Part shown: in pieces, positions 1,809-57,815 of the stretch
How positions within the stretch are numbered: the first letter of the stretch is position 1
How the letters are laid out: each line of letters opens with the position of its first letter
Sequence record: LR756504.1
Strand: one strand, 5' to 3'
Length of the DNA stretch: 64,000 nt
Notes under the pieces: model-generated
The model's database searches: none
What the model saw: the letters and a program-made list of their open reading frames with translations, nothing else
Told to the model about the DNA's origin: nothing
Position numbers and translations under genes: made by a program

Positions 1809-2810
1809 ATGAGTAAGTTAAAAAGATTGAAATCTTTTAGTGATTATAAACAGGATATGGGAAATACACCAAAATCTACTCCTGTACCATTGGTTTCGGA
1901 AAGAAATTTACATAAAAGTGTAGTTACTAAACAAAGAATGGTGAAAGAATCTGCTTTTAAAGTGGGTGATGATTATAAAGTAAAGGTTACTTTTGATATT
2001 CCTGTATCATTAATATCTGCTTATATTGAAAAAGTACAATCTGAAACAGGTAAAAATGCTTTAGAACATTTTAATGAAACTGAGTTGGCTGAACAAATGG
2101 CTCAATACATACTAAAACAACATTTAAATATTGATCAAATACCGTCAGCATTATCAGTTGGTGAAGATCCTAATAGTTCTGAATCTACAGAAGCGCAAGA
2201 AGAAAATGATGCTACTGATTTAGGTGCTGAATTTGGTGATACGCCATCGGGTGAAACAGCAGAACCAGGTATTGAAGAAACACCATCAACAGATACACCA
2301 TCTAATATTGATATTAATGATTCTGATTTAAATATTGATAAAGAAGAAGATGGAGAAGATATATCATTAGAAGATGATAATAAAGAAGAGGTTGGTGAAG
2401 ACATTCCATTAGAAGATGAAACTTCTGAAGAACCTGAATCCGAAACAAAAGAAGATCAAGATGAAAAAGAAATTAACTTAAAAAGTGATGAAGTAAATCT
2501 TGGTGAAGAAAGAGAGATTGAAGCAAATAAAATAGAAGAACAAGAAGAAGAATATGAAGAAATAAATCTTGATGTTGATACTATTGGTGATACAACAGGT
2601 GTATTGAATAGTGTTACTATGGCTACTAAAGATATGTTATTCTATCTTAAACATCATGGAATAGATTGTACTGATTGTACAGCCAAAGATGTTGTAGATA
2701 TTTATAATGAAATATCAAAAGAATATACAATTGGAATTGATGATGATGGTAATGAAATAAAGCCAAGTCATAAAGAAGATTCCGATTTTAATGATTCTGA
2801 TTTGTACTAA
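1809..2810 (+). CDS. Highly acidic (D/E-rich) protein, possible head-internal/scaffold protein
   Basis: Long low-complexity D/E tract; N-terminal LKSFSDY tag variant; AATATATA at 1778-1785 upstream. Confidence 0.6.
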   Translation: MSKLKRLKSFSDYKQDMGNTPKSTPVPLVSERNLHKSVVTKQRMVKESAFKVGDDYKVKVTFDIPVSLISAYIEKVQSETGKNALEHFNETELAEQMAQYILKQHLNIDQIPSALSVGEDPNSSESTEAQEENDATDLGAEFGDTPSGETAEPGIEETPSTDTPSNIDINDSDLNIDKEEDGEDISLEDDNKEEVGEDIPLEDETSEEPESETKEDQDEKEINLKSDEVNLGEEREIEANKIEEQEEEYEEINLDVDTIGDTTGVLNSVTMATKDMLFYLKHHGIDCTDCTAKDVVDIYNEISKEYTIGIDDDGNEIKPSHKEDSDFNDSDLY

Positions 2811-2829
2811 AAAATAAAAGATAAATGTT

Positions 2830-3099
2830 ATGAGTAAATATAAATATTTAACAAATTTTAAACAATTTGAATCACCTTATGGGAAAGATTCCAATGGTAC
2901 ACAGACATCACATATGTATAAAGTTGGTGATAATGTTATAGTAGATGACATTAACGAAAAACATGCTGGTAAAGAAGGTGTCATTGTAGTACCTACTGAT
3001 TTACATGAAGTAAAAGAAAAACAAGGTGAAATGGTAAAAGTGAAATTTACCGATGGTAAATCGGATTATGTAAGTATCTATGAATTAAACAAGATATAA
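2830..3099 (+). CDS. Small KOW/SH3-like protein with N-terminal tag variant
   Basis: YKVGDNVIV...HAGKEGVIV KOW-like pattern; starts MSKYKYLTNFKQFES. Confidence 0.45.
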   Translation: MSKYKYLTNFKQFESPYGKDSNGTQTSHMYKVGDNVIVDDINEKHAGKEGVIVVPTDLHEVKEKQGEMVKVKFTDGKSDYVSIYELNKI

Positions 3100-3101
3100 T
3101 G

Positions 3102-3128
3102 AAAAGGGAGATTAATTCTCCCTTTTTT
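3102..3128 (+). terminator. Intrinsic terminator
   Basis: aaaagggag-attaatt-ctcccttttt; near-copy of the 1721 terminator. Confidence 0.85.
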
Positions 3129-3400
3129 ATTTCCGAAATTTTTAAAACTTTTTTACACATTTTCCATATATTATAAAGTCTGTGGTAAATTGTGAATTTA
3201 ATATATACATTTATGGCAATAGGTTCAATACCATCAAGACTTTACTTAGATTATGATATGGCTATCCATATTTATAATAAAATGGGAGATATTCAATTTA
3301 TTGATTTCTTAGAAAACCACTATGTAATCTCTATGGATAAAGATTGTTATTATTTTCTTTTAAGTATTAAACAGGATTATGATAAATTAAAAAAGTTTTA

Positions 3401-4378
3401 ATGTCATTTATGAAACAAGATTATTACAACATTTTAGGTGTTGATAAAAACACTTCGCCAGAAGAATTAAAAGCAGCTTATAGAAAAAAAGCAAAAGAAC
3501 ATCATCCAGACAAAGGTGGTGATGCGGAACAATTTAAAATTATCAATTCTGCATATGAAACTCTCTCTGATCCACAAAAAAGGAGAGAATATGATAACCC
3601 GAATCAATTTTCAAATTTCCAAGGTTCTCCTTTCGGTCAAGAGTTTAATTTCGATTTCGATTCAATATTTAATCAATTTAATTTTGGTGGACATAGAAAA
3701 CAAGAATTTAGAGAAGATTTAGATATAAGATTAACTGTAGATATACCGTTTAAAACTATTTACCAAGATAAACCATTAGAAATAAAATACTATAAAAATA
3801 CACCATGTTCTAAATGTAATTATACAGGTGTTGAAGAAAGTGATGATTCTGCTGATTGTTTACATTGTGATGGTAAAGGACATAGTACAAAATTTGGAGG
3901 AAATAAAACAACTTGTAATTATTGTCATGGTTCAGGTAAAATTCATACAAAGGCATGTTCTCAATGTGATGGTAATAAAGTAGAATCTAAATTAGAAACT
4001 ATTACAATGGACAATGTATTTATATTAGGTGAAGAACCACAAAGGATGGCATATAGAGGTAGTGGACACTTTTCTAGATATTATCCTGGTAGAAGAGGTG
4101 ATTTAATAATTTTATTAAACCCTATAGTAGATGGAAAATATTTAAGACAAGGTGTTAATTTATTACACCAATTGGATATAGATTATAGAACAGCAATTGA
4201 AGGTGGTGAAATTGAGTATACGCATCTTGATGACAAAATTTATAAAATAAGAATTTCTGAAAAATCTAATAAAGGAACTAAACTAAAAATGACAGGAAAA
4301 GGATTATTACAAAGAGATAAAAAAACAAGAGGTGATTTAATAATTGAATTATCTATAATTATAAATTATGCAATTTAA
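3401..4378 (+). CDS. dnaJ: DnaJ (Hsp40) chaperone
   Basis: J-domain ([11 protein letters not shown] motif), G/F region, four CxxCxGxG-type zinc motifs, C-terminal GKG...RGDL substrate domain. Confidence 0.95.
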
Positions 4379-5028
4379 AGATTTGATTGATAATGGTGGT
4401 AGTGGTGTTTATTATAAAAATGTATCCATTATAAAAAAAGAAATAGAAAATATAAATGAAGATTTTATTTCTAAGAAAAGGATTATCCCAAATTCATTAA
4501 AGGATGTTTTACTTGATGAATCAATAACATATTGTTTTAATGAATATTATGTTGATGGTAATATGAAATCATATAGAGATTATAATAATAAATGTACAAG
4601 TGTATCTTTTTATTATGAATATAATGGAACAATATTTCTAAGTATTAAGAAAACGAATAGTGGTAAAATAACACGTAAGTGTATATTTGCGTGGGATGAT
4701 ATTTATATTGAAAGAATTTATAAAGCTATATGTAAAATAGATAGGAATAATATTATTTCAGAAATCGTTAATGAATAAAAATATATAGAAAAATACAACT
4801 ACAATGATGGATATTAAAGATAATTGTACAGAAATGTTAAGAGAAGAAAGAGAAATCTTAATAAAAACATTAATAGATAATTTAGATGAATTGAAAGAAG
4901 ATTTTTATAAAGGACATATTCATATAGACAAAGAATCAATGTTGAGAAAAATTAATGAAATTTGGGATAACTATCAATTTGAAATGAAATATCGTAAGCT
5001 TAAGGCTTTATCAGAAAAGAAATAAATT

Positions 5029-5391
5029 TTAATTATCCTTTAATATAATTAAATATTTTCTATTTGTAATAGGAGATATATTTTCTTTTATTGTCCAATT
5101 ATTATCCGATAATTTCATTTTAAATAATCTTAATCTTATATCACATAAAACATATAAACGAATTTCGGTATAGTTTACACTTTTAATTATATTTTTTATT
5201 TTTTTATAAAAATTTGGTTCAGGTTTTCCAATTTTATTAAATGAATAGGTGTCTGTATCAATATCATAATATGCAATATCTAAATCTACTGTTTTCTTAT
5301 CCCTTTCTTCTAAAATTATTTTATATTCTCCTATATAAAACACATTTTTATTGGAAGAATCGTAATTTTCAAATAATTTGATATATTTCAT
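5029..5391 (-). CDS. Hypothetical protein with N-terminal MKYIKLFEN tag
   Basis: ORF track; TTATATATA motif upstream. Confidence 0.65.
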   Translation of the reverse strand: MKYIKLFENYDSSNKNVFYIGEYKIILEERDKKTVDLDIAYYDIDTDTYSFNKIGKPEPNFYKKIKNIIKSVNYTEIRLYVLCDIRLRLFKMKLSDNNWTIKENISPITNRKYLIILKDN

Positions 5392-8753: not shown

Positions 8754-10457
8754 TTATGAAATAGAAATAGTAGTTATTGCCCCAGCATTGTCAATTGAAA
8801 TATACCATAACGTATTATCTGGACTTCTACCACTAATTACACTATCAGCTATTGGGTTATTATATGTTTGTGTAGCATCTGAATATACATTAAATGTGGA
8901 GTTAGAAATTGTACTATTAAAAGTTATATTTTTTACAGTATTATTAAATGCGATATTAGTACAAGTATTATTTATTATTAAATTTGTGCAATTTATTGCG
9001 AATTTACCAACCGTTACTGAACCTGATGTAGATACTGAAATATTATTACAACCTGTTGCAAATTCAGTAGATGAAATAATACCATCAATTATAATATCAT
9101 TACACCCTATATTAAATTCATTGTTAAATAATGTACCATAAGAAACAACACTTTTAGAATTCTTAATCTGTGAACAGTTATTAGATATTCTATTACTTAT
9201 TGCCCATAACATAAAGTTGTCGGTGCAATTATTACCAAGTGAATTATTAGATGAATTGTAAATAACATTATTGCTATTACTTGCGCCAAGTGTATTATTT
9301 TTTCCATATTGATTAATATGATTAGATGTAGAGAAATCGCCGATGGTGTTATAAGATGAAATCATATTTAAATAATTATTAGAGCAATTTGATTTTAATG
9401 TATTATATCTTGCCATATAACCAATGTAATTATTAATACCAGTTTTACCTATTGTATTACCGTGTGCCATACCACCAATAAAGAAATATGTGTTATTACT
9501 ATCTACGTATGTGTTGTTTGATGAGTTGATAATAAAATTATTACATCCATAATTTACTGTTGATAAATCTGGTGATATATTATCAACTTCATCAGATATT
9601 GTTCCATTAAAACAATTTTGTTCAATTTGTATATTAACACCCCTTTTAATTACAATATTATTATATGCTATTGATATATTCTTTTTAACATAACTATTTT
9701 TAACATTATTTTCAAATGTAAAATATTCAGTTGGAGTATTTGCAGCATAAACAGTACCCCCCAAAAAAGTAATTACTTGATCCCATGATAACATGTTTGC
9801 TAAATCGAGTTGTTCCCAATATTTAGAAAGTAAATCATCTGAAAATGTTCCACTTGTATGTGCTGTCCTACATCTATAAAGAACACTACTTTGGTTAACT
9901 ATTGTACCTATACCGTAAGGAGTTGATGTTACCCATGCAGTAAATAAACCTATAGTTATAGGGTATCTAACAAACTTAACAGTTCTAATATCATAATAAG
10001 CAAAGTTATTATTAACAGTATCGTGTCTAAATGTTATTTTACCATTTCTTGGTGTTGACGAATCTTCACAAAGAATATCCTGAAAATCATAATGAATTAA
10101 ATCAGTGGGGAATAATGTTGAATATGCTTGTTTATGAAAAGTATTTGTAGAAACAGATAGTACAAGTAAAGGCTCTGTAGTACCAGTTTTTATTGTGGTT
10201 GTGATAGGTTGTTGATATTTTGTTACATAATCACTTATTGAATAGAATTTACCCACTGATAGATTGCTGTTTGATACTAAAGTCGCTAAATTTGCATACG
10301 TTATAGCTTCAGTATTAATTAAATCATTTGAGTTAAGAATGGATGATATTTTACCATTTGTACCAAAAACTGGAATAGTACCCGAAGTACCATTAATGGT
10401 TTTTGAAATTAATTCTTCATTAACGTTATAATTACCAAAAGCTGATTTAAAAGACAT
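8754..10457 (-). CDS. Tail-fibre/structural protein with CBM-like insert and Asn-rich beta-helix repeats
   Basis: AWVTSTPYGIGTIV...YRCRTAHTS...YWEQL carbohydrate-binding-like module; repeated NxIGxxxxNN; TAATATATA motif upstream (10479-10486). Confidence 0.6.
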   Translation of the reverse strand: MSFKSAFGNYNVNEELISKTINGTSGTIPVFGTNGKISSILNSNDLINTEAITYANLATLVSNSNLSVGKFYSISDYVTKYQQPITTTIKTGTTEPLLVLSVSTNTFHKQAYSTLFPTDLIHYDFQDILCEDSSTPRNGKITFRHDTVNNNFAYYDIRTVKFVRYPITIGLFTAWVTSTPYGIGTIVNQSSVLYRCRTAHTSGTFSDDLLSKYWEQLDLANMLSWDQVITFLGGTVYAANTPTEYFTFENNVKNSYVKKNISIAYNNIVIKRGVNIQIEQNCFNGTISDEVDNISPDLSTVNYGCNNFIINSSNNTYVDSNNTYFFIGGMAHGNTIGKTGINNYIGYMARYNTLKSNCSNNYLNMISSYNTIGDFSTSNHINQYGKNNTLGASNSNNVIYNSSNNSLGNNCTDNFMLWAISNRISNNCSQIKNSKSVVSYGTLFNNEFNIGCNDIIIDGIISSTEFATGCNNISVSTSGSVTVGKFAINCTNLIINNTCTNIAFNNTVKNITFNSTISNSTFNVYSDATQTYNNPIADSVISGRSPDNTLWYISIDNAGAITTISIS

Positions 10458-10744: not shown

Positions 10745-11563
10745 TTATTTAATTACGTCTTTTCCTAATTCTATCATTCTTTTAAAAACTGCATCCTTAT
10801 CATTTGGTAAAGTACCATTTACAATTTCATCTTTCAACTTTTTCTTGATAATTCCGATTTCTCTACCTGGTTTTAGATTAAAATAGTCCATTATCTCTTG
10901 ACCAGAAACAGGTGGCTCAAATGTACGAACTTTATCGGCTTCTTCTAAAGCTATCATTTTAGATTTTAGTACATCAATACTTTTAATATTACTTTGTTTC
11001 CTCTCTTCATTCTTTGTTGTCATATCACATTTAGCGAAGAGTAGTAAATCATCCAAATCATCACCAATATCTAATTTAAATCTCCTAAGAGCAGAATCAG
11101 ATACATTAGGGATACATAATACTTTAACTTGACCATGTAAATTAATTAATTTCTTTACATAGTCTATCTTATCCATTGGTAAACTTAAACGTTTGAAAAT
11201 GTTATCAATCATTCTAGCACCAATTTCTTCGTGTAAATGGAATGTCCAACCTAAAGATTTATCATATCTTTTGGATTTAGCTTTTCCAATATCATGTAAT
11301 ATAGAAACACAGATTAACCAAGGGTTATCTGTCATATTTCTTGTATTTCTAACAACTTTTATAGTATGCCAAAAATTGTCTTTATGGCCATTATTACCCA
11401 CCCTTTCAACTCCCTTTAAAGCAGTTAATTCGGGTAATAGATAATCTAATACCCCCATTTCATTTAGTTTTTCTAAATCTTCCGCAGGAGTATTTGAATG
11501 TAAAATGTTCAAAAAAATCTTAGTTTCCTCTTTAAATGATTCAAATGTCATAAAATATTTCAT
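10745..11563 (-). CDS. HD-domain protein resembling the C-terminal half of CCA-adding enzyme/poly(A) polymerase (no nucleotidyltransferase head)
   Basis: YLLPELTALKGVE, HKDNFWHT, LHDIGK, TFHLHEEIGA, PPVSGQEIM...LKPGREIG; N-terminal MKYFMTFESF tag. Confidence 0.8.
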   Translation of the reverse strand: MKYFMTFESFKEETKIFLNILHSNTPAEDLEKLNEMGVLDYLLPELTALKGVERVGNNGHKDNFWHTIKVVRNTRNMTDNPWLICVSILHDIGKAKSKRYDKSLGWTFHLHEEIGARMIDNIFKRLSLPMDKIDYVKKLINLHGQVKVLCIPNVSDSALRRFKLDIGDDLDDLLLFAKCDMTTKNEERKQSNIKSIDVLKSKMIALEEADKVRTFEPPVSGQEIMDYFNLKPGREIGIIKKKLKDEIVNGTLPNDKDAVFKRMIELGKDVIK

Positions 11564-21266: not shown

Positions 21267-22856
21267 TTATTTCAAATAGTCAATTAACGAAGAAAGTATT
21301 TCTTGTTTATTTTCTATACCATCAATTTGTTTTACAAAATTTATAAATCTTTTTTTATCATCATCACTTGTAAATTTAATATGTTGATTTCCAATAGAAC
21401 CATTATCATAAACTCTAAATGTTGTAGTATAATTATTATCAACAGTTTCAAAAAAATCATTTATTGAATTATATACCAATGTATTATAATCATCAAATAG
21501 TTTACTGTTTATAAAAATTATATTTAAGAATCCTGCTGATGCTACATAGGTACTAACACCAGAAGTATCAATTACGCATGTTATAGGATTCTCGTATTTA
21601 CCTACTAGTAAATTAAAAACTCCCCATTTTTCTTTACTTTTATTGAGATAATAAATAAAATTATTTGCTTCTGAATACACATCATCCTCTTCTTCGTCTT
21701 CATCATCAAAGTCAACATTTTCTCTAATATCTAATGGTTTATCAAAACGAAATGCATTTAGAGGGATATTATTTTCAGTTAAGAATGTTATAACATTTTT
21801 TATACTATTGGTATCGGTAAATTTTCTATAGATTACATCAGATGTTATATTAACGTATATTCTATATTTAGATTTTTTCCTTTGGTATTTACCCAATCTA
21901 ACATAATCATTATTCTTTGCAATATCTAAAAATTCTTCTCTAATCATAGTAAATTTAATGCTTGACGGAGTTCCCCAAGTACTCGTTTTATTATATTTTA
22001 GACTATGTGGTTCAATAATACATCTACAATTACCTGTTTTTTTATTCCATGTATGTATAATTCCATATTTTTCTTTACTTTTTTCTAAGTCTTCGAAAAA
22101 TATTTCGTCTTCTTCTTCCTCGCCATCATCATCGTAATCTAAATATTCATTTAATGTCATAATTTTTTTCAATTCATCATCAAGTTCAATAGTCTTAAAT
22201 GTCTTTTCGCATTCTTTTACTAACTCTTTAATATTATTGTATTTTTTAGATATAACCATAATACCTTCTAATTCTATAGATGGTCCATCAACAGATAAAG
22301 TTTCAATTTCTTTTATATCTTTATTAAGAACAATTGTGTAATAATCACTATCTTGAATTAAATGATACCATATCTTTCTACTATTATCATTAGTGGCATA
22401 AGAAGAACTTCTAGCATATCCAATTTCATTTATAAGAGCTTTGTACATCTTATACCCTAAACCAATTCCAAATAATTTATCGGATAATCCTATTGCATGT
22501 ATTCTATTTAATGGATGTTCAACTTGAAAAGCTAATTTTAATTTAAGTCTATTTTGTGTAATTTCTTTATATTCATTTACTAATTTAAGTAAATGTATGT
22601 TCTCTTTTACTGATACTGACCATTCATCAGTTTTGTAAACTTTTCTATCTAATACAGCATATAAATCATCTACAGAAATGTATTTTAAAATTGTTCTAAT
22701 TTCGGTTAATAATAATTCACCTTTATCATCAGTTTGGGATTCTGGTTTATTTTTTGTAAGTTCTTTATTTTGTATTAGATAAAAGTCCTTATTAGAGTCT
22801 ATCCATTGTTTAGACATCTCTTTTTCAAATAAATAGAATTTCTTTAAAAATTTCAT
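21267..22856 (-). CDS. Multidomain protein with GNAT-like segment and N-terminal tag
   Basis: RIHAIG...LFGIGLGYKMY...RKIWYHL; MKFLKKFYLFE; TAATATATA at 22861-22868. Confidence 0.55.
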   Translation of the reverse strand: MKFLKKFYLFEKEMSKQWIDSNKDFYLIQNKELTKNKPESQTDDKGELLLTEIRTILKYISVDDLYAVLDRKVYKTDEWSVSVKENIHLLKLVNEYKEITQNRLKLKLAFQVEHPLNRIHAIGLSDKLFGIGLGYKMYKALINEIGYARSSSYATNDNSRKIWYHLIQDSDYYTIVLNKDIKEIETLSVDGPSIELEGIMVISKKYNNIKELVKECEKTFKTIELDDELKKIMTLNEYLDYDDDGEEEEDEIFFEDLEKSKEKYGIIHTWNKKTGNCRCIIEPHSLKYNKTSTWGTPSSIKFTMIREEFLDIAKNNDYVRLGKYQRKKSKYRIYVNITSDVIYRKFTDTNSIKNVITFLTENNIPLNAFRFDKPLDIRENVDFDDEDEEEDDVYSEANNFIYYLNKSKEKWGVFNLLVGKYENPITCVIDTSGVSTYVASAGFLNIIFINSKLFDDYNTLVYNSINDFFETVDNNYTTTFRVYDNGSIGNQHIKFTSDDDKKRFINFVKQIDGIENKQEILSSLIDYLK

Positions 22857-30581: not shown

Positions 30582-31205
30582 TTAATCATTAATATTTATT
30601 TCTATAGCAGTATTTTTAATTAACGCATTAATATTTTCTATTATATTAATGTATAATTTTTTATAAAAATCTATATCACCAAAATCGGTAAAGTTTAAAT
30701 TATTATTGTAAAAGTAATCAGGAAATTCACTATTTTTATAAGATTTTACAAATTCATTAATATTCGGTAATGATACAGAAACAATATATTGTTTTATATT
30801 ATCTATCTCATTGGTTAAAACTGCCTCTTCTTGTTCATCTGCTTTTTTCCCAGTTTTTTTCAATATTCTTTTCCCTATTTTATCATCAAAATAATCAACT
30901 GATATAACTTTATATTTTTGTGATATTTTATTTAAATCTAAATCCATTCTTACTAATAATTCTTGATCCTCAAGTCCCATATTTTTTATATTATTTGGTG
31001 TATTTAAAAATTTGTTTCTTGTTAATGATATGAATTTCATTCTTTTTGAAATGTGTTCTTTTTTATACAAATTAGGAAAGTCGTTATAAAAATATCTGTA
31101 TGCTTTTAATTTATTTTCTTCTAAAATGTAATATAAATTTATCATTTCTGTAAAATGATAAACAATATTACTATTAAAATTTTCAAATATTTTTATGTAT
31201 TTCAT
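30582..31205 (-). CDS. ADP-ribosyltransferase-like protein with MKYIKIFENF tag
   Basis: VYHFT, ISLTR, VRMDLD, DEQEE; paralog of 51057..51740. Confidence 0.5.
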   Translation of the reverse strand: MKYIKIFENFNSNIVYHFTEMINLYYILEENKLKAYRYFYNDFPNLYKKEHISKRMKFISLTRNKFLNTPNNIKNMGLEDQELLVRMDLDLNKISQKYKVISVDYFDDKIGKRILKKTGKKADEQEEAVLTNEIDNIKQYIVSVSLPNINEFVKSYKNSEFPDYFYNNNLNFTDFGDIDFYKKLYINIIENINALIKNTAIEININD

Positions 31206-31211
31206 GTTTTT

Positions 31212-31889
31212 TCAATTTATTATTTTTACTTTTGTATCTAAATCACAATCACCTGTATCTAATAATTTCCAAAGTTCGACATAATTAAGTTTCGATCTTC
31301 CATAAGCATTAGAATTTATATTTTGTACCGCGATATCATATTCATAACCTTGAGAATCATTTAATGTGATATTAACGTTATTAACTATATAAGTATTTTC
31401 ACTATTGTATTTATAGAATTGAATTTTCTTACCAATTAAAGACATAGCATATTCTTCTGGTATGGTATAACATTTTGGTAATTTTTTTATATTCTCGCTA
31501 TATAATGGGAATGCTTCTTTTAATTTAGATATAAAATCATACCATTCATCTTCTTTAAATTGAATATCATTTAAATTGAGCTTTGCTCCAAAATATGTAC
31601 TTATATTTAATTGTAAATCATATTTATTAACATTATCGTAAAATTCATCAATATTTTTGAAATGATTGTGTTCTAAATTTAAAACAGTAGATTCACATCC
31701 ATTAATTCTAGCTGTTATATTACCATCATTTTCTGAAAAAGAAATATACCTAATACGAAAAGTATTTCCTTGAATATAAACAACTGGTGATTTTCTAATT
31801 GAATTGAAAAAGTTATCAATTTCTATATAAAATTCATCATCTTCTTCATTTTCATCATCAAAGTCTTCAAATAGCTTTAAATATTTCAT
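31212..31889 (-). CDS. Hypothetical protein with MKYLKLFEDF tag
   Basis: TAATATATA at 31895-31902. Confidence 0.65.
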   Translation of the reverse strand: MKYLKLFEDFDDENEEDDEFYIEIDNFFNSIRKSPVVYIQGNTFRIRYISFSENDGNITARINGCESTVLNLEHNHFKNIDEFYDNVNKYDLQLNISTYFGAKLNLNDIQFKEDEWYDFISKLKEAFPLYSENIKKLPKCYTIPEEYAMSLIGKKIQFYKYNSENTYIVNNVNITLNDSQGYEYDIAVQNINSNAYGRSKLNYVELWKLLDTGDCDLDTKVKIIN

Positions 31890-32485
31890 ACGAGTATATA
31901 TTAAACTTTATTTTTAATGTTGGTATAATTACCATGAGCTTTAATTATATTACTAATCATAAAGAATTAAAATATAAAGTTGGGGATACCGTATTTATCG
32001 ATTTGCCTTATATGGATGAAGTTCCAAAGAATTATTCTGATATTGATTACTTAGTAATAGGAATTAAATCATATAAAGAAGGTTTAAGATATTCAATTAA
32101 AGCAGAATGTGAAAATTTCTATTTACATGGTGTAGAAGAACATAAGTTGGTTACTATGGATGAACTATGGAATAATAAAATAAAATGGTTAGGGAAGTAA
32201 AAATGAAAATTCTCAACAAATTTTACCTTTCGAATGAATTAAAAGGTTTGATATAATTGTAAGATTGAATAACTTCATCATCACTAATGTTAGTATTATT
32301 AGTGTTTTTTGGATATAAATTAGTATATGGATTACTATAGAAATTGTTAATTACTTTATTGTTATCTGATTTGGGATAATATTTCTTTCTATTCCTTTTT
32401 TTAGCTTTCTTAGCCTCATTGAGAAAATCATACCACGAAAAAATTTCAATCATAACAGTATTATAATTTGGTTTATATATTAAAA

Positions 32486-36829: not shown

Positions 36830-37720
36830 TTAAAAAGTTGTTGTAATTTTATTTTTCTTTATAAACCTATTAACATCTCTCATAACAACATCATATATTG
36901 GTCCTTTTTTAAATATAAAATCATTTTTCCACGTTTTTAATTTTTTATTATAAACAGCAACAGTAGAATCATATAGGTTTAAATATATGTATCTCCCATC
37001 AGAAAAAGAATATTTATCATCATGATTCAAATATTCGGTTGAATATTTTAATTCATCAACAAATGATAAATCTTTTATAAGTTTACTATCTAAAGTAATA
37101 GCATTTCTACTATAATCATTTTCAATTAAATATGTTATAAATTCTTTTTTAACTTCATTTAGATATGGTTTGTAGATAATTCCAACTTTATAATCATCTG
37201 CTCTAAATTTAACATAAAATGAATAGAAATCCTTATCATGTATTAAATTATTCCATATACTTTTAACCTCATTTGAGGCATCACCTTCAGATGAAATATA
37301 ATGGAATTTCTTTGCTACATATTTGTAAATATAATTACCTAAATTAATACCCTTTAAAAAAGTAGGAATGCCTGCAAAATGAATTCTATTAAAGTTAATC
37401 CATTCTATTGTAATATAAAAATATGGGTCGTCTGAATTTTCATCACGATCATCACGAACGTAATACAATTTTTTATACATTTTTATTAATTCTTTATACT
37501 GTGTCATAATATCACCAGTAAAAAATAATATCTCCTTTCTATCATTATACTCAAATTCTAACTTATTACTTTGCATAAGCTTTTGAAGTTTTTCTTTAAA
37601 CTTATTCAAATTGCTATAAAAAGCATTTTTTTGTGTATTATAGTTATTAAATTTACCTAATGTTATATTATCAGATGATTTAAATTCTCTCTCTAAAATC
37701 AATTTTTTGATATATTTCAT
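36830..37720 (-). CDS. GNAT-like domain protein with MKYIKKL tag
   Basis: RIHFAG...LKGINLGNYIY...KSIWNNL, homologous to the segment in 21267..22856; start moved to ATG 37720. Confidence 0.55.
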   Translation of the reverse strand: MKYIKKLILEREFKSSDNITLGKFNNYNTQKNAFYSNLNKFKEKLQKLMQSNKLEFEYNDRKEILFFTGDIMTQYKELIKMYKKLYYVRDDRDENSDDPYFYITIEWINFNRIHFAGIPTFLKGINLGNYIYKYVAKKFHYISSEGDASNEVKSIWNNLIHDKDFYSFYVKFRADDYKVGIIYKPYLNEVKKEFITYLIENDYSRNAITLDSKLIKDLSFVDELKYSTEYLNHDDKYSFSDGRYIYLNLYDSTVAVYNKKLKTWKNDFIFKKGPIYDVVMRDVNRFIKKNKITTTF

Positions 37721-39823: not shown

Positions 39824-40720
39824 AGTATATGATTACAAAAACATTCTATAAATAATAAAAAATGGCTATATACAGATTAGGATTTACACAGATTAAATCA
39901 ATACAAGGAAATACATTCATATATAAAATTCTTATTAAGAATGAATTCGAAAAAAATTATGAAATTGAGTATTTATCATTAATACGTATTTATGGTGAAC
40001 AAGATGCGGTTTTAGAAATACACAAAAATCAAACAACATTAATTTCCAAAGATAGAGTATTTGACATCCACAATAAAGAGGTGACATGGTTCAAAAAAAT
40101 ATGGTCAGGATTATAAATTGAACATTATGGATTCTAATTTACATAATATTTTAAATAGAATTGGATTCGAAAAAGTTTATACATATTCAGAAAATTTTGT
40201 AAATACTGTTTATAAATACAAACTCTATTGTCTTAGTGTATATGTTTATAGCAACAGTGAAATTTATTATAACTTTTATATTGATGAACATCTTTATTTT
40301 ATTGATGATAATAATACTATATTATTTGGAGATAATAGAAATAGTCTATTAAAAATATTATTAAGCGAATTTAAAGTAGAATTAAGAAAAAGTAGAATAG
40401 AAGAACTACTTTAATATGTATTCTATTCTATAGTACACATAATTCTTTAATTAAGGTGTCTAATTTTTTAATTCTAATAAATGTTCTAATTTCTTTAAAA
40501 TTAGCATTTTTTGTAATAAAAGTTCTAACGTTAGTAATTTTGTATTCACCATCATAAGTTTTTGTTATAATAAACTCGTGGAAAGAATGGTATGTATATT
40601 CTCTATCACTACCATAAAATTTAGCAGTTTGTTTATCAATACCTAGAGAATCTAATTCGCTCACATTAATTATATTCTCTATTTTTACTAAGTTTGAAAA
40701 TAATTCTAAATATATACAAC

Positions 40721-42580
40721 ATGGAATTAAAGAAGATAACAATTACAAAAGATATGATCATATCATTGGTAAATAGTGATGGTGATGCTATGAAAATGTT
40801 TGATAATAATATTAGTACCAATTGGTTTCCTGGTTGGAATGATATATATTATCCAGCATCAATAATTATTGATTTAAAAGGTAGTTTTTCTATAAAAAAA
40901 ATAAGATTATTTGATGGTGAAGCTACACCACAATTAAAAATATTAGCTGGTATAGATGATGTTTTTAATACAAAAGAGCTTCTAAATATAAATTTAGATA
41001 AATATAATCAATGGAGAGAATTTAATGTAGATGTTATTGTAAAATATTTAATAATTCAGCTTCCAAAAACTAAAACATTTTCGGCAAATGAGATAGAGTT
41101 CTATAGTGATAGTGGTGTTTTAAATGATATAATAGAGTCAAAATTTAAATTACAAGATAATGTTAATGGTATTTTTGGTGTTAATTCATTTCACTGGGTT
41201 GATAGTAGTTTATTAGAACCCTTTAAGTATATAAGAGAATATCAGTATTGGGAATGGATGGAAAATACTAAAGGTAAATATACTTTTGAGCCTACTAGGT
41301 CGGGTGCTGGTAATTTTGATACGCATTATCAAAAAATGAAAGATGATGGTTTTGTAGTTGTACCGTGTATTAATCAATCTCCAAAGTGGTTTAATGTTAA
41401 TAATGATGCTTCTTTTAATAAAGATTGGAAACCCATTTTACCTGGTTCGGATTCATTAAGCCCATCATCATATATTGACTTTGCTAAATTTTTATTTCAA
41501 TTAAGTGCTAGATATGGTACTGAAATTGTTAGTGATAGTTTACTTGATATTGATAGTATTCCTTTTTGGACTGGATCACCTAAAAATACCAAAAAAACTG
41601 GTCTAAATTTATTACAATATATAGAAGTTTGGAATGAACCCGATAAAACATGGAAGGGTGCTCAAGCATACTTCTCACCATTTGAATTTGCTGCTATGAT
41701 GTCTGCTTGCTATGATGGACACTGTGGTACATTAGGTCCCAATGTGGGGATTAAAACGGCCAATCCTAATATGAAAGTAGTGATGGGTGGTTTAGCTAGA
41801 TTATCTATTGATTATATTAAAGCAATGGACTTATGGTTTAAAACATATAGAACAGATAAGATATTCGCATCAGATGTAATTAACTTTCATCACTATTCTA
41901 ATTCTATTGATATACAACAATATAATAATACAAATTCTTTTGGTATATCACCAGAAGAAGATGATATTTGTGGAAAAATGATAGAATTAAAAACTTATAT
42001 TAATACTAATTATACAGACAAAGAAATGTGGCTTTCTGAATATGGATATGATACAAATAATTCATCTCAAAGAGTGCCAGATAACACAAATACAATGAAT
42101 AATAAAGAAGTTATTCAAGCATCATGGTTAACAAGAACTATGTTATCATTAATGAAATCTAATATTGATAAATCTTTTTTATACATGATTTATGATGAAA
42201 GTATTAATGATAAAGGATTATATTCTATGTCAGGTGTTGTAAAAGATAAGTCACTAAATTTTGATAAAAAAATAGCTTGGGATTATATCAATAATTTATT
42301 TAAAGCACTTTATAATAGTAAATTAGATACTTATAATGATGATTTAAATGGTAATATAAATTATGTTTTTAAAAATAACGATTCATATAATAGTATCTAC
42401 TTTAATAGAAATAATAATTCTGATATAAAGTATTATATTTCTAATAGTTCTGATATTACAATTGTAAAAGGTAATGAACAACCAGTTAAAATAATTAGTA
42501 ATGATTTAAACAAATATATAAAAATGATAAATTTTAATATAGATGAAATACCATTAATTATAACATCTTATAAAAAATAA
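40721..42580 (+). CDS. Discoidin (F5/8 type C) domain fused to a clan GH-A glycoside hydrolase
   Basis: MFDNNISTNW..IIIDL..IRL..EIEFY discoidin; VWNEPD acid/base and WLSEYG nucleophile motifs; AATATATA at 40709-40716, start ATG 40721. Confidence 0.75.
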   Translation: MELKKITITKDMIISLVNSDGDAMKMFDNNISTNWFPGWNDIYYPASIIIDLKGSFSIKKIRLFDGEATPQLKILAGIDDVFNTKELLNINLDKYNQWREFNVDVIVKYLIIQLPKTKTFSANEIEFYSDSGVLNDIIESKFKLQDNVNGIFGVNSFHWVDSSLLEPFKYIREYQYWEWMENTKGKYTFEPTRSGAGNFDTHYQKMKDDGFVVVPCINQSPKWFNVNNDASFNKDWKPILPGSDSLSPSSYIDFAKFLFQLSARYGTEIVSDSLLDIDSIPFWTGSPKNTKKTGLNLLQYIEVWNEPDKTWKGAQAYFSPFEFAAMMSACYDGHCGTLGPNVGIKTANPNMKVVMGGLARLSIDYIKAMDLWFKTYRTDKIFASDVINFHHYSNSIDIQQYNNTNSFGISPEEDDICGKMIELKTYINTNYTDKEMWLSEYGYDTNNSSQRVPDNTNTMNNKEVIQASWLTRTMLSLMKSNIDKSFLYMIYDESINDKGLYSMSGVVKDKSLNFDKKIAWDYINNLFKALYNSKLDTYNDDLNGNINYVFKNNDSYNSIYFNRNNNSDIKYYISNSSDITIVKGNEQPVKIISNDLNKYIKMINFNIDEIPLIITSYKK

Positions 42581-42587: not shown

Positions 42588-42974
42588 ATGAAGTATTTAA
42601 AATTATACGAAGATTTTTCAGATGAATGGGATGATGAACCAGAAGAAGATGATACTGATGTAGAAACATGTTTTAACTATAATGATGATGAAAAGACTCT
42701 TGGTGTAGATATAAAAAGTCTAAAAGCTTATTTCGAAGAAAAGGGTATTAATATCGTATATTCTATTTTTGATATGACAGATTATGATTATGGTATTCAT
42801 TGTGAGTATGAACTTAAAATATCCATAGAATTTAATAATATAGTAAACTATCTCCCACAAAAACAATCATTAATAGATGACTTTCGAAGATTGCCTTTTG
42901 TAGAAATCACTGATGGGAATAAGTACTTCTTTATTGTTAAATTTAAAGAAGGTATATTCGTTGAGGAAAATTAA
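42588..42974 (+). CDS. Hypothetical protein with MKYLKLYEDF tag
   Basis: ORF track; co-directional behind the hydrolase. Confidence 0.6.
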   Translation: MKYLKLYEDFSDEWDDEPEEDDTDVETCFNYNDDEKTLGVDIKSLKAYFEEKGINIVYSIFDMTDYDYGIHCEYELKISIEFNNIVNYLPQKQSLIDDFRRLPFVEITDGNKYFFIVKFKEGIFVEEN

Positions 42975-44118: not shown

Positions 44119-44661
44119 TCATGACTTTTTACCTGTACCATGAATAGTAAATTTTTCTTCATGTTCTGTACCAGGTGCAACTATAACATCAAAAGTAATG
44201 TCTTTATTGACTAAGCTTTCTACAGAAGAATTCATCTTTCCAACTTCGGATTCCATGTTTACCATTACTGAACCACCTTCGTTAATTGTTTTAGACTCAT
44301 TTAGATGGTTTAAATCTTCTAATGATAATTTACCTTTAAATATGATTTCTTTAGCACCTTTCTTCTTATCAAATGAGTGTTTTTCTAAACCAATACTTTC
44401 TAAAAAATCTATTATAGGTTCTACTTTCTCTAAAGTAAATCTTGCTGTACCGCTACCATGAAATTCAATACCAAACTTATTGGAAATAATGCTTTTTAAT
44501 TTAAAATTAGGCTTATTGTCAAATGATTGTTCCATAAAAACATCATTACCAAAAATATTAATATGTATCCATATAGGCTCTTGTAAAGTACCCGTTATAT
44601 CTCTTTTCCATTGATTTTTTAAGTTATCAATGAAACCTTCGAATGTTTTCATATTTTTCAT
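44119..44661 (-). CDS. Hypothetical protein with MKNMKTFEGF tag
   Basis: TAATATATA at 44679-44686; start moved to ATG 44661. Confidence 0.6.
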   Translation of the reverse strand: MKNMKTFEGFIDNLKNQWKRDITGTLQEPIWIHINIFGNDVFMEQSFDNKPNFKLKSIISNKFGIEFHGSGTARFTLEKVEPIIDFLESIGLEKHSFDKKKGAKEIIFKGKLSLEDLNHLNESKTINEGGSVMVNMESEVGKMNSSVESLVNKDITFDVIVAPGTEHEEKFTIHGTGKKS

Positions 44662-49633: not shown

Positions 49634-49966
49634 TTAAGATCTATGTGATAAATCGAATATTGCATGTTTAATTCCTCCTTCTACCGCTTCTGTGTAAGAA
49701 GGATATCCACCTTTATGATCATTTTTTGTAATGATACCATTACTCATTGTATCTTTAAAAACATAAAAATAATTTATTTTACCATCGCTATAAGTGGAAA
49801 CTACACTAATAGTTAATCTATATTGATCTGAAATATACGTTAATTGTTCTATTAAAGACATAGTCGATAATTTCTCTTTTAATTGTTCAATTTTAAATTC
49901 GTGAGATTTATCATTATCAAAGAGATTATCAAATGCTTTATTTTCAAATTTTTTAATATGTTTCAT
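49634..49966 (-). CDS. Hypothetical protein with MKHIKKFEN tag
   Basis: ORF track; TATATA motif upstream. Confidence 0.6.
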   Translation of the reverse strand: MKHIKKFENKAFDNLFDNDKSHEFKIEQLKEKLSTMSLIEQLTYISDQYRLTISVVSTYSDGKINYFYVFKDTMSNGIITKNDHKGGYPSYTEAVEGGIKHAIFDLSHRS

Positions 49967-49992: not shown

Positions 49993-50196
49993 TTAACTAT
50001 CTTTTACAGAATTTTCACACCACGTTTTAAAATCATCTACAGCATTAGCAGAACCAATTCCTATCTCTTTATAATAAAGTAGATTGCTCATATTATCAGC
50101 CTTCTTAAATTTGTTAGGTATAGGATTCCATGAATATGGTGAGTTTAATGCTAAAACCTCTTCGTGTGAATCGTTAAATTTTTTCAAATGCTTCAT
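49993..50196 (-). CDS. Hypothetical protein with MKHLKKF tag
   Basis: ORF track; ATTATATATA upstream. Confidence 0.55.
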   Translation of the reverse strand: MKHLKKFNDSHEEVLALNSPYSWNPIPNKFKKADNMSNLLYYKEIGIGSANAVDDFKTWCENSVKDS

Positions 50197-51056: not shown

Positions 51057-51740
51057 TTAAAAAGAAGCAGATTGATAGCTTTTTAGACTAATAAGAGTAC
51101 CAGGCTTCCATAAATTTTCTTCATCAATTAATCTAACTTCTATCTGTGGATAGATTTTTAAAAATTTTAAAAATTCTTCTTTCCCCAAATATGTATTTAA
51201 AGTTGTTTCATAGCAAAATTCTATAGCTATTAAATATTTACCAACATTTTTTATAGGTTTGTATATTCTCTCTTCGTATTCAATTTCAAGTCCATTCGGA
51301 TCTCTTTCTAAACCAACATTATTTATTGCCAATCTTTTACTATTAGTAATATCTGCTTTATGATAACTATTTTTCTTTGGATTTAAAACATCTCCAATTG
51401 TCTTGGATATAATATTTTTGTTTTTACTTTCTTGATTTTTAGCATAGGCAACTTCATCAAATGGTTTATTTGTATATCCATCATTTTTTAGTTTATCGCT
51501 ATCAAAAACAAGACGAACAGAACGCATACCATCCATAGAATAATACCTGGACCTAGTGAATGATATAGATTTAATTGTTTCACCATTATCATCAAGATAT
51601 CCATATGCAGGAGTATTAAGCTTTAATAAATTAGAAGTAATAACACCTTCCAATTTAGATGTCCAATGATACAATGGTTGTTTACTACCTTTTAAATAAG
51701 ATTCATTTAAATGCTCAGTAAAACTCTTAATGTGCTTCAT
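51057..51740 (-). CDS. ADP-ribosyltransferase-like protein with MKHIKSFTEHLNE tag
   Basis: LYHWT, ISFTR, VRLVFD, EYEE; TAATATATA at 51745-51752. Confidence 0.5.
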   Translation of the reverse strand: MKHIKSFTEHLNESYLKGSKQPLYHWTSKLEGVITSNLLKLNTPAYGYLDDNGETIKSISFTRSRYYSMDGMRSVRLVFDSDKLKNDGYTNKPFDEVAYAKNQESKNKNIISKTIGDVLNPKKNSYHKADITNSKRLAINNVGLERDPNGLEIEYEERIYKPIKNVGKYLIAIEFCYETTLNTYLGKEEFLKFLKIYPQIEVRLIDEENLWKPGTLISLKSYQSASF

Positions 51741-51761
51741 GAACTATATATTAGAATTATT

Positions 51762-54252: not shown

Positions 54253-54266
54253 ATTCCCAATTCCTA

Positions 54267-55702: not shown

Positions 55703-55745
55703 ATACTATTATAGGGAAATTATAAGGGAAAGTTTTATATAAAAC

Positions 55746-55770
55746 AAAAAAGAGGCTATTACACCTCTTT
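55746..55770 (-). terminator. Intrinsic terminator
   Basis: aaagagg/cctcttt stem with minus-strand U-tract, after stop of 55804..56112. Confidence 0.65.
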
Positions 55771-56146: not shown

Positions 56147-56178
56147 TTTGTATTTCTCATTATTTTTTAATATATTTG
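56147..56178 (+). promoter_or_regulatory. Bacteroidota sigma-A-type promoter
   Basis: TTTG(56147)-N20-TATATTTG(56171). Confidence 0.75.
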
Positions 56179-56205
56179 TATGAATAGTAAAAACCATCAA
56201 ATAAC

Positions 56206-56844
56206 ATGAAATTTTATTTTATTGTACTAATATCACTGCTTATTTTTTCTATAGTAAACATTGACACCGTAGATATTGGTATAGAAGAAAATATACAACA
56301 ATCTGAAAATATAGATATTTCCTCGTATAAGATATTCTATGTAAAAAATACTAAAATAGTAAATATTGAGGAATCTATGATTCTACATGATAATGATGAA
56401 TTCTCAGAATATGAACATTTATATAAAGTATTGATAGCACAGAAATTCACCCCCAAACAAATTAAAACAATTAAAGAAATAGTTATAACTAATACAGAAT
56501 CATTTAGTATAGATGGCGTTAGTGATATATTAGGTGTATGTCTAAATAAAAGAAGAGATGAATATAGTTCTACTATTCTAATAGCATCTAAACACGATGA
56601 TCATTTATACACGCTATTACATGAATGTTGTCATGCTCTATATTTTAATAATTCTGAACTATTCGATAGTAAATATAAAAATAGATGGATTGAATTAAAT
56701 CAATATGTATCTAATTATGCTCACACAAGTATAAAAGAAGATTTCGCCGAAACTGGCGCAAGTTATCTATCAAAAAGAACAGTGAGTGATGATTGTAAAG
56801 AAAAATTGAAATTATTCGAAGAATTCTATAATGAGACTAAATAA
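56206..56844 (+). CDS. Secreted/anchored zincin-like metallopeptidase, paralog of 47313..47921
   Basis: LLHECCHALY, IKEDFAETG, identical C-terminus KEKLKLFEEFYNETK. Confidence 0.7.
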   Translation: MKFYFIVLISLLIFSIVNIDTVDIGIEENIQQSENIDISSYKIFYVKNTKIVNIEESMILHDNDEFSEYEHLYKVLIAQKFTPKQIKTIKEIVITNTESFSIDGVSDILGVCLNKRRDEYSSTILIASKHDDHLYTLLHECCHALYFNNSELFDSKYKNRWIELNQYVSNYAHTSIKEDFAETGASYLSKRTVSDDCKEKLKLFEEFYNETK

Positions 56845-56902
56845 ATTTGTATTATTTTGAATTTCTCTATTATTTATATTACATTAACAAAAAGACGTAA
56901 AG

Positions 56903-57123
56903 ATGCTTAAATTCAAAATTAAAAGTGTTATAGAAGTTAGTGATTGGGATAAATTAGTTAGTGAAACCTATGGTAGACCATATAACTTTCAACAACAAGA
57001 TGGCACTCAAGATAGATGAAGAGTTAATATATCTGTACCTCAACCATATACTAATGATGATCAAATGTACGATTTTATTCCTGAATTAGTTAATGGTTAT
57101 TGAAAAATGAAATATCACTATAA
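56903..57123 (+). pseudogene. Disrupted, chimeric gene remnant
   Basis: MLKFKIK...GRPYNFQQQDGTQDR*RVNISVP...ELVNGY*; in-frame TGA at 57017 and 57101; 3' end replaced by a copy of the 3' end of gene 54947..55276. Confidence 0.65.
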
Positions 57124-57546
57124 TAGATTTTCTATTTTCTCTATTCTAATATCATTAGAGATATTATCGAATATACTGAATAGGGTATTATTCATATTCT
57201 TAGGTATATTAAGTGTGGAATATATCTCTTTAGATTTGCTATAATACAGTGAATATAAATTAAATTCGTCATTATCTTTTTGAGATAAAAATCTATAATT
57301 ATTATAAATATCATATTTTCTAGCATATCCAGTAATATCAGCATATCTAATAATAGTTATTTCTAGCATAGGTATTTCATCACTATTAAAATAAGCAAAA
57401 AATGGATACAACTTAATATCGAATTTATCATTTATTTTAATAGTGATATATTTATACTTTATTGTATAATCACCATTATTTAACTTAGCATCTATGATAC
57501 TATTATAAGTATTGAAGAAGTTTGTTATTTTATAATTTATATTCAT
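57118..57546 (-). CDS. Paralog family C, copy 7
   Basis: RYADITGYARKY, DIRIEKIENLL. Confidence 0.8.
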   Translation of the reverse strand: MNINYKITNFFNTYNSIIDAKLNNGDYTIKYKYITIKINDKFDIKLYPFFAYFNSDEIPMLEITIIRYADITGYARKYDIYNNYRFLSQKDNDEFNLYSLYYSKSKEIYSTLNIPKNMNNTLFSIFDNISNDIRIEKIENLL

Positions 57547-57566
57547 ACTACATCAAAATATTGACT

Positions 57567-57815
57567 TTATTTAGTTTCGTCTTTATGATCAAATCCTAAG
57601 CTCGCTAATTTAGCGTAAAAATTTATCATCATATTTAAATAGTTTGTTTTTAATGGACCTTTTTTAACATTTTTAAGTAAATCTCTAACTCGGCTTATTT
57701 CAAGTATTAAATTATCTAGTGTTTCTATATTTTCTTTCATATCATCTCTATGAGACATTACTTCTTGTTTTTCATTAAGTGTCTCATTTATTTTAAATTT
57801 TTTTAAATGCTTCAT
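57567..57815 (-). CDS. Hypothetical protein with MKHLKKF...LNE tag
   Basis: AATATATA at 57836-57843 (minus strand). Confidence 0.6.
   Translation of the reverse strand: MKHLKKFKINETLNEKQEVMSHRDDMKENIETLDNLILEISRVRDLLKNVKKGPLKTNYLNMMINFYAKLASLGFDHKDETK

Follow-up and report, generated by a model that had tools for sequence, protein, structure and literature searches.

Here, we present an analysis of a short N-terminal peptide tag and the promoter associated with it in LR756504.1, a 636,363-bp uncultured phage record without annotation. Its final 64 kb (572,364-636,363; referred to here as the window; G+C content approximately 25%) had been the subject of an earlier note, which proposed that unrelated genes there encode head-packaged proteins marked by a common N-terminus. 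Among the circularised genomes of Al-Shayeb et al. 2020, LR756504.1 is one of the four largest; it belongs to the Mahaphage clade, and its predicted host is a member of the Bacteroidetes (PMC7162821). Using a set of 960 genes obtained by running a crude open reading frame (ORF) caller over the whole 636-kb record, we estimate that approximately 70-80 genes encode tagged proteins. More importantly, we suggest with moderate confidence that the tag represents a T4-type capsid-targeting propeptide that is greatly expanded in this phage, tied to a promoter resembling the late promoters of T4, and serviced by a gp21-type protease. The packaging principle as such is already known from T4.

All 13 tag-bearing ORFs listed in the earlier note exist and begin with MK[YHFN][ILFMY][KMH]x[FYL]; one uses a GTG start codon and two start internally to the longest ORF. 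Of two additional ORFs that had been described as variants, that at 1809 (MSKLKRLKSFSDY) is supported with 11.9 bits by the profile described below, while that at 2830 (MSKYKYLTNFKQFES) reaches only 2.6 bits and is doubtful. A strict regular expression identified 42 carriers genome-wide. With an iterated profile of the first 12 residues and a cut-off of ≥8 bits, 82-83 of the 960 N-termini were matched, compared with 1 in 2,426 internal segments that start with Met and 19 in 4,800 composition-shuffled N-termini. A few of the matches, e.g., the N-terminus of an SMC-like ATPase, are false, and the number of genuinely tagged genes given above was set accordingly. The consensus is M-K-[YH]-[LI]-K-x-[FY]-E-x-[FY], with a sister form K-K-F-N-x-F-[LIV]-N-E. 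Position 10, which is not part of the defining expression, is F or Y in 31/41 strict tags against a background of 10%. When the first 20 residues were trimmed and the remaining bodies were clustered by BLAST, the 83 proteins fell into 76 clusters, confirming that the carriers are for the most part unrelated. Synonymous codons within the tags are used as in the genome as a whole or in a slightly more varied manner, arguing that selection acts on the peptide and not on the DNA. The tagged genes are also unusual in their orientation: 11 of the 13 profile-tagged genes in the window lie on the minus strand (p = 2e-5), and genome-wide 38/63 (60%) run against the local majority orientation, compared with 181/762 untagged genes (24%; p = 5e-9), in agreement with the earlier description of minus-strand islands. 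A hydrophobic stretch in the first 45 residues was found in 0/76 tagged proteins, i.e., a core of at least 10-12 hydrophobic residues following a charged N-region is absent, which excludes Sec, Tat, and lipoprotein signals. The genuine lipoprotein-like N-termini in the window (26109 and 47313) look quite unlike the tags.

The motif [TA]ATATATA is present within 35 nucleotides (nt) upstream of 11 of the 13 listed ORFs. In the window, TAATATATA is not enriched overall (18 copies vs 16.7 expected), and the minus strand carries 15 of these 18 copies. Across the whole record, the positional distribution is sharp: the distance from the beginning of [TA]ATATATA to the start codon downstream is either exactly 12-13 nt (46 genes) or 24-34 nt (with a peak at 28 nt), and the motif is nearly absent elsewhere between −100 and −8. 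It lies within 40 nt upstream of 58/83 tagged genes but only 92/877 untagged genes (Fisher p = 2e-32). Altogether, the motif precedes approximately 150 genes, including those for the Gp23-type major capsid protein (Pfam 8e-26), the T4-type portal (Portal_T4 2e-65), a sheath-like protein, and giant structural proteins, and it is found upstream of 50 of the 62 distinct capsid genes from related IMG/VR contigs. Because it also precedes capsid, portal, and sheath genes, the motif alone does not define the tagged set, and the earlier note needs correction on this point; rather, it appears to be a general late promoter that marks the whole late regulon, of which the tag marks a subset. Consistent with the late expression proposed in that note, the phage encodes a gp55-like late sigma factor (8e-10 to the PHROG "late sigma transcription factor"), the gene for which neighbors those of the head. 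An untagged gene in the window also carries the motif: 8754..10457 (−), which encodes a 567-residue protein with a weak CBM_5_12 match, has it at 10479-10486 (−29), again indicating that the motif is not confined to tagged genes.

The two distance classes differ in what follows the octamer. In the −24 to −34 class, the sequence logo contains an additional conserved A-run 3 nt downstream of the octamer; in the −12 class, this position is instead occupied by the A of the ATG. In the window examples of the latter class (11568-11575, 22861-22868, 29112-29119, 50201-50208, and 51745-51752), the octamer ends exactly 4 nt before the ATG. We infer that the A-run is the region of transcription initiation and that many of the tagged genes are probably expressed from leaderless mRNAs. 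T4 late promoters have the sequence TATAAATA and are read by gp55/gp33/gp45. The promoters described here resemble them in having an A/T-only octamer approximately 10 bp before the start site and no −35 element, in coexisting with a gp55-like sigma factor, and in driving structural genes; they differ in the form of the element (T-W-ATATATA, N3, A-run) and in having a class that is separated from the ATG by 4 nt and would thus yield leaderless mRNAs. We notice that a 62-residue ORF adjoining a gene with a late promoter (record 473810..473998, −) resembles ribosomal protein bS21 by eye.

The head module of LR756504.1 is of the T4 type, comprising a portal resembling gp20, a protease resembling gp21 that is fused to a scaffold-like region, and a capsid protein resembling gp23. 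The protease is encoded by a 764-codon ORF (record 185342..187636) between the portal and capsid genes that likely starts with MKPVLIIEN; the protease domain spans approximately residues 53-230, and the C-terminal two thirds are scaffold-like. On its own, this ORF gave only marginal matches to Pfam S80 (3e-5) and S77, and a phmmer search with the single sequence against the PDB gave no match; a profile of six orthologs, however, matches the structure of T4 gp21 (5JBL, E = 2e-7), and the ORF is assigned to the PHROG head maturation protease (1.7e-33). The ortholog in Tenacibaculum phage PTm1 is annotated as "prohead core scaffolding protein and protease", and the order portal-protease/scaffold-capsid is common to both phages. 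A search for a gp24-like vertex paralog carrying the tag gave only a 178-residue fragmentary match to the capsid protein (record 472629..473165), which is untagged.

T4 gp21 and its relatives in phiKZ and SPN3US all cleave after Glu within a short motif (PMC5694885). In LR756504.1, [LI]xE is present in 66% of the tags, compared with 20% of untagged N-termini and 19% of internal controls, and [LIV]NE[SN] occurs in 15 N-termini vs 2.3 expected. The same motif is conserved at the positions in the head proteins at which maturation would be expected. In the capsid protein, P-[VI]-L-E-N lies near residue 18 and [IL]-N-E-N near residue 42, directly before the conserved mature part, and the Glu of the site is invariant in 62/62 distinct sequences of the clade. 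The protease has LI[VI]E at residue 8 of its N-terminus in 53/54 sequences, comparable to the T4 gp21 site LIE-9 (PMC9026906), and [LIV]NES directly after the protease domain in 54/54. At the level of sequence, the tags end in the [LI]-x-E context expected of a gp21-type, Glu-specific protease. The more specific proposal of cleavage after the tag Glu holds for only a portion of the tags: the P3 residue of the first Glu is L or I in 43/73 tags, but this Glu is located anywhere from residue 6 to residue 21 (at residue 8 in 22 cases, followed by 11, 13, and others).

The analogy to the T4 capsid-targeting sequence (CTS) held at the sequence level with respect to the head module, the promoter, the [LI]-x-E context, and a subclass of tags that agrees with T4 at four residues. 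The CTS of IPI, IPII, and IPIII was described by Mullaney & Black 1996 and is reviewed in PMC9026906 and PMC9958956; in the T4 record, IPII and IPIII start with MKTYQEFIAE. Suppressor studies of T4 IPIII attribute targeting to residues 4 and 7 (Y and F) and processing to residues 8 and 10 (I and E) (PMC9026906). The pattern derived from these residues, [FY]xx[FY][LIV]xE, is present in 23 N-termini of LR756504.1 vs 3.5 expected, 18 of which have the late motif; examples are MSIKKFNEFLQE, MSFIKKFNDFLNES, and MKHLKRFKTFINES, and a 735-kb relative carries MIKTFDEFINES. Tags of this subclass, such as KKFNEFLNE and MIKTFDEFINE, agree with T4 at all four experimentally important positions. The majority form, MKYLKxFExF, has an aromatic pair and a Glu as in the T4 CTS, albeit in a different register. 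In general terms, both systems have a short N-terminal peptide (10-20 residues) on otherwise unrelated proteins, an MK start, two aromatic residues three residues apart followed (in LR756504.1, in part of the tags) by [LI]-x-E, gp20/gp21/gp23-type head assembly with a Glu-specific prohead protease, and carriers that are polymorphic accessory genes. They differ in the dominant consensus, which is MK[YH][LI]Kx[FY]Ex[FY] in LR756504.1; in the number of carriers per genome (approximately 70-80 vs 3-5 in T4); in the carriers, which here are mostly acidic or enzyme-like and in T4 small and basic; and in the TATATATA late promoter, which here often abuts the ATG.

Among the tagged proteins of the window, Pfam recognised only the protein encoded by 10745..11563, which matches HD (1e-8) and tRNA_NucTran2_2 (2.6e-6) as well as the PHROG tRNA nucleotidyltransferase (2.4e-10), and resembles the C-terminal half of a tRNA nucleotidyltransferase. 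It thereby bears out the HD phosphoesterase of the proposed cargo. The putative peptidase is likewise supported, as 27827..29107 matches phrog_4191 "peptidase" (6.3e-49). For the proposed proteins resembling ADP-ribosyltransferases (ARTs), we found two candidates. That encoded by 51057..51740 has, based on its predicted structure, a probable DarT/Tpt1-like fold: it has no match in Pfam or PHROG, but in Foldseek searches against the PDB its AlphaFold2 (AF2) model matched DarT (7omx, E 1.2e-4, probability 1.0; 7omx/7omw/7omv, E 1e-4 to 4e-4), with modest TM-scores of 0.41-0.49 and a mean per-residue confidence (pLDDT) of 68.6. PLYHxT, TR, and EYEER are invariant within its family. The second, 30582..31205, is weakly related to this family (hhalign probability 73%, E 3e-5, in the YH.T...ISLTR region). 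By contrast, the two GNAT-like proteins of the earlier note were not recovered, Pfam giving no GNAT signal at any threshold for any tagged protein of the window. Elsewhere in the genome, the majority of tagged proteins have no match; those that do include an SLT transglycosylase (PHROG baseplate hub, 1.4e-25) and proteins matching PG_binding_1, a Zn-protease-like family, FMN reductase, UPF0227, and AAA_25. A GluRS/GlnRS-type synthetase (record 263081..264682; Pfam 3.6e-92) has a full-length catalytic domain from residue 46 and carries the tag KKDYSDFLKE within its 45-residue N-terminal extension. A GluRS-like enzyme is an odd candidate for capsid cargo.

The tag behaves as a modular add-on, not only in the extension of the GluRS-like enzyme but also in the 51057..51740 protein. 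In the AF2 model of the latter, pLDDT is below 50 at residues 1-18, while the core is confident. Its family comprises 301 cluster representatives, most of which retain the tag; orthologs with 33-45% identity keep F7 and E13 ahead of the invariant SYLxGxxQPLYHxT body, and, among the listed representatives, between 9 and 25 tag residues precede this fixed body, a few members being nearly tagless. In at least six proteins (window 31212-31889 and 42588-42974; record 47163, 62693, 312206, and 330120), an acidic SEDWDDEEEE-type stretch follows right behind the tag and precedes unrelated bodies; this stretch could be an extended propeptide or a DNA-mimic-like region.

Tags are not limited to LR756504.1. 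Its capsid protein has 48-52% identity to those of the other giant Mahaphages, 32% to that of LR756500.1, 30% to those of Lak phages, and 22-27% to those of cultured jumbo phages of Tenacibaculum, Chryseobacterium, and Flavobacterium. Tags with the −12 motif are present in the sampled pieces of LR745206.1, LR756501.1, and LR756500.1. Scanning IMG/VR with the DNA pattern TATATATA-N4-ATG-AAR-YAY-HTN-AAR-NNN-TTY-GA, which joins the promoter to the tag, gave 43 loci, compared with 0 for a codon-permuted control pattern of identical composition. In these loci, 103/697 genes are tagged, up to seven of them consecutively. A related capsid protein is encoded in 444 IMG/VR contigs, of which four are common to the capsid and pattern lists. 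In PTm1, two genes (208828..209517, −, and 224211..224432, +) encode proteins with a common but different N-terminus, M[KR]KLYxxISEN[FL][IV]xE, and one of the two has TATATATATA directly upstream; this may be PTm1's own version of the tag. We found no earlier report of the tag in huge phages, Al-Shayeb et al. 2020 making no mention of it (PMC7162821), and no literature joining capsid targeting with megaphages.

Two further systems are relevant for comparison. T4 Alt, an ADP-ribosyltransferase whose N-terminal propeptide mediates packaging, is present in the head in approximately 40 copies, is processed by gp21, and acts on injection (PMC5694885, PMC9026906). It thus sets a precedent for this type of cargo. 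The 51057..51740 protein is an analogous candidate, i.e., an enzyme of probable ADP-ribosyltransferase fold with a putative N-terminal propeptide in a phage with a gp21-type protease; however, structurally it matches DarT/Tpt1, enzymes of the H-Y-E class with DNA or RNA as substrates, and not Alt. phiKZ, 201phi2-1, and SPN3US load tens of different proteins into their heads, a gp21-related protease (Pfam S80) trims these proteins after Glu, and conserved N-termini on diverged paralogs have been read as CTS-like (PMC5694885, PMC7411985). The LR756504.1 protease also touches S80. The propeptides of the phiKZ group are mostly longer than 100 residues and have A/S/G-x-E sites, while those proposed here have 8-20 residues and [LIV]-x-E, as in T4; the evidence for the former comes from virion proteomics and that for the latter from sequence.

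If the tag is a capsid-targeting propeptide, the following sequence of events can be envisaged. The gp55-like late sigma factor would read the T-W-ATATATA promoters, and the tagged genes would thus be expressed late, alongside those for capsid, portal, and sheath. The aromatic/hydrophobic face of the tag would dock each protein on the scaffolding core, which is fused to the gp21-like protease, as the gp23-like shell closes. The Glu-specific protease would then cut off the tag at the [LIV]-x-E junction, and the matured proteins would remain in the head and exit with the DNA at the next infection. Docking, cleavage, retention, and ejection are all inferred. The proposed cargo would include a DarT-like ADP-ribosyltransferase, an HD phosphohydrolase, a peptidase, an SLT transglycosylase, and a GluRS-like enzyme. 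A bolder formulation, in which the tag is a portable address label by which Bacteroidota megaphages of the Mahaphage clade load some 70 or more different enzymes per capsid, with the corollary that many late mRNAs are leaderless and start at the A of the ATG, we put forward only tentatively.

Several observations weigh against capsid targeting as we propose it. Head cargo would amount to approximately 8% of the genes, far above the handful of CTS proteins in T4, and some of it, e.g., the GluRS-like enzyme, has no obvious need for injection. The tagged proteins lean acidic (38% with an isoelectric point [pI] below 5), whereas the T4 internal proteins are basic. In approximately 40% of the tags, the P3 residue is other than L or I, and three tags have no Glu in residues 6-22. 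The tag profile, which is built mostly on the majority form, scores the T4 internal proteins at a nonsignificant 3-4 bits; for this reason, we claim a likeness of pattern and context and not homology, and we do not claim common descent with the T4 CTS. No such tag was found in 45 kb of PTm1, a cultured distant relative, and every tag-bearing relative is uncultivated. Finally, the start codons and gene calls are the product of the crude ORF caller.

Of the alternatives, we consider it unlikely, though the most serious of them, that the tag is a virion-assembly propeptide without any role in injection, found on scaffold, inner-body, or other structural and assembly factors that are subsequently degraded or kept in the capsid, or that it targets proteins to the tail or baseplate. 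A late promoter and gp21-type sites also fit this explanation; several tagged genes lie within structural clusters (record 528-546 kb), baseplate hubs have lysozyme domains that resemble the SLT-domain protein, and the acidic tails behind many tags are nearer to scaffold and core components than to the basic T4 internal proteins. On the other hand, a purely structural role would be odd for 76 unrelated families that include numerous enzyme-like proteins (ART fold, HD, peptidase, and GluRS), and most tagged genes are single opposite-strand islands in accessory regions outside the structural modules. Somewhat less probable again is a function of the N-terminus unconnected to the capsid, i.e., as an element in translation initiation or early elongation, a degradation or regulatory tag, or another localisation signal. 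Transcripts of the −12 class would have their 5' ends at the AUG or directly beside it, the first codons can be important for leaderless mRNAs, and MK is the commonest start in this genome (K at position 2 in 255/960 genes). Yet genes of the −12 class (26 genes), of the −24 to −34 class (31 genes), and without a promoter of their own carry the tag alike, while 25 genes of the −12 class are untagged. Codon choice in the tag is no more constrained than elsewhere in the genome, and the conservative F/Y and L/I substitutions, together with the varying length of the tag before a fixed body, point to a function of the peptide. The lack of hydrophobic stretches rules out an export signal, and the match to the site of a Glu-specific protease would be left unexplained.

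The two remaining alternatives have little in their favor. That promoter and first codons form a mobile DNA cassette spread by recombination, or that the tagged genes are recent paralogs, in either case without a common function of the peptide, would agree with the fixed 4-nt spacing between promoter and tag in many genes and with the arrays of neighboring tagged genes in IMG/VR contigs. We rejected this explanation, to which we assign a very low probability, on the grounds of the 76 body clusters and of synonymous sites that vary as freely as in the genome at large. In addition, the motif is entirely lacking upstream of 25 tagged genes, the tag is retained in orthologs of 33-45% identity and across a capsid divergence down to 32%, and no near-identical promoter-tag blocks of more than 30 nt were seen between unrelated genes. 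A by-product of chance in a genome of 25% G+C that is rich in K, I, N, F, Y, and E is practically negligible as an explanation. Each residue of the tag does have A/T-rich codons, and TAATATATA shows no overall enrichment; nevertheless, chance is rejected by the internal-Met and shuffled controls (1/2,426 and 19/4,800 vs 82-83/960) and by the codon-permuted IMG/VR control (0 vs 43), and the sharp positions of the motif also speak against it.

The tagged genes of the window are as follows, in order of position. The variant at 1809..2810 (+) encodes a 333-residue protein without a match in Pfam or PHROG and has the late motif at 1778-1785 (−31). Likewise without a match in either database, 5029..5391 (−; 120 residues, MKYIKLFENY, 20.6 bits) has the late motif TTATATATA at 5408-5415, 24 nt 5' of the ATG. 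The HD-domain protein (10745..11563, −; 272 residues, MKYFMTFESF) is preceded by a motif at 11568-11575, exactly 12 nt before the ATG. Two genes, 21267..22856 (−; 529 residues; motif at 22861-22868, −12) and 36830..37720 (−; 296 residues from the second in-frame start, an ATG at 37720; motif at 37746-37753, −33), are members of one tagged paralog family with four members; in these, the predicted cleavage junctions are MKFLKKFYLFE/K (L-F-E) and MKYIKKLILE/R, respectively. The putative peptidase (27827..29107, −; 426 residues) starts at the GTG mentioned above with (M)KYYHKYENFFKE/S (KYYHKYENFF) and has the motif at 29112-29119 (−12). The weakly ART-like 30582..31205 (−; 207 residues, MKYIKIFENF) lacks its own motif and is located 6 nt downstream of 31212..31889, with which it is therefore probably co-transcribed. 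The latter gene (−; 225 residues, 25 bits) begins with MKYLKLFEDFDDENEEDDE (MKYLKLFEDF) followed by an acidic linker and has the motif at 31895-31902 (−13). Also in the acidic-linker group, 42588..42974 (+; 128 residues, MKYLKLYEDFSDEWDDEPEEDD, MKYLKLYEDF, 27.9 bits) has no motif of its own and begins 7 nt after 40694..42580. The protein encoded by 44119..44661 (−; 180 residues from an internal ATG at 44661) starts with MKNMKTFEGF (25.5 bits; motif at 44679-44686, −25). The neighboring genes 49634..49966 (−; 110 residues, MKHIKKFEN) and 49993..50196 (−; 67 residues, MKHLKKFNDSHEE, MKHLKKFND) have motifs at 49987-49994 (−28) and 50201-50208 (−12), respectively. The DarT/Tpt1-like protein (51057..51740, −; 227 residues) starts with MKHIKSFTEHLNE/SYLKGSKQPLYHWT (MKHIKSFTE) and has the motif at 51745-51752 (−12); after the predicted Glu, its mature N-terminus would be SYLKGSKQPLYH. 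The last of the listed genes, 57567..57815 (−; 82 residues, MKHLKKFKINE/T, with an I-N-E junction), has the motif at 57836-57843 (−28). An additional candidate, absent from the earlier note, is 32223..32453 (−), which encodes a 76-residue basic protein (pI 9.5; MIEIFSWYDFLNE/AKKAKKRNRKK) and has the motif at 32474-32481 (−28). With 4.2 bits, it falls under the profile cut-off, yet the F-L-N-E junction is present, and in charge and size the protein resembles the T4 internal proteins.

Among the other genes of the window, a minus-strand island beside this FLNE-tagged gene (32771-33178, −) encodes a SET-domain protein (Pfam 4e-16), a putative lysine methyltransferase. Four tandem arrays of paralogs are present. 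An array of approximately eight paralogous genes of approximately 140 codons (51762-57546, −) is flanked by tagged genes; its products share the N-terminal region xxFFNTYNSIIDAKLN and have no match in Pfam. Four paralogs of 99-101 residues (MDLSFExLxDGMEFSA) are encoded at 20045-21257 (+), four of 69-74 residues at 33713-34570 (+), and a pair of paralogous membrane proteins at 48433-49223 (+). Eight tRNA genes (four Leu, three Ser, and one Cys) are clustered at 16462-17929 (+). A full-length DnaJ co-chaperone (3401-4378, +) has a J domain (9e-23), a CxxCxGxG zinc domain, and a C-terminal domain. Untagged enzymes comprise a GIY-YIG nuclease (6229-7164, +; Pfam 3.6e-6), a family-25 glycosyltransferase (8106-8738, −; Pfam 1.2e-7), an NAD-dependent epimerase/dehydratase (24640-25545, −; Pfam 1.5e-41), and a trypsin-like peptidase (61725-62492, +; Pfam 2e-13).

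Knowledge of huge phages comes almost exclusively from metagenomes, and no role has been assigned to the majority of their genes. If capsid targeting is the function of the tag, a motif of 10 residues together with a promoter would sort approximately one in 12 genes of a 636-kb genome into a class of proteins that are made late, carried in the head, and first act in the next cell. In T4, the packaged proteins (IPI, IPIII, and Alt) form the class that holds anti-restriction and host-takeover proteins. By the same reasoning, candidate injected counter-defence proteins could be listed from sequence across hundreds of contigs, i.e., the 444 IMG/VR contigs with a capsid protein of the clade, and the tag would offer a compact packaging signal for protein delivery by Bacteroidota phages. 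As a by-product, the T4-late-like TATATATA element at a fixed 4-nt spacing to the ATG suggests that leaderless late mRNAs are made in these phages. If the tag does have this function, the CTS principle of T4 would also be extended over a very deep branch within the T4-like head lineage. In the bolder formulation given above, which we regard as tentative, the tagged proteins would represent, by a wide margin, the largest injected "ejectome" put forward for a phage to date, one that would be readable from sequence in hundreds of uncultivated genomes.

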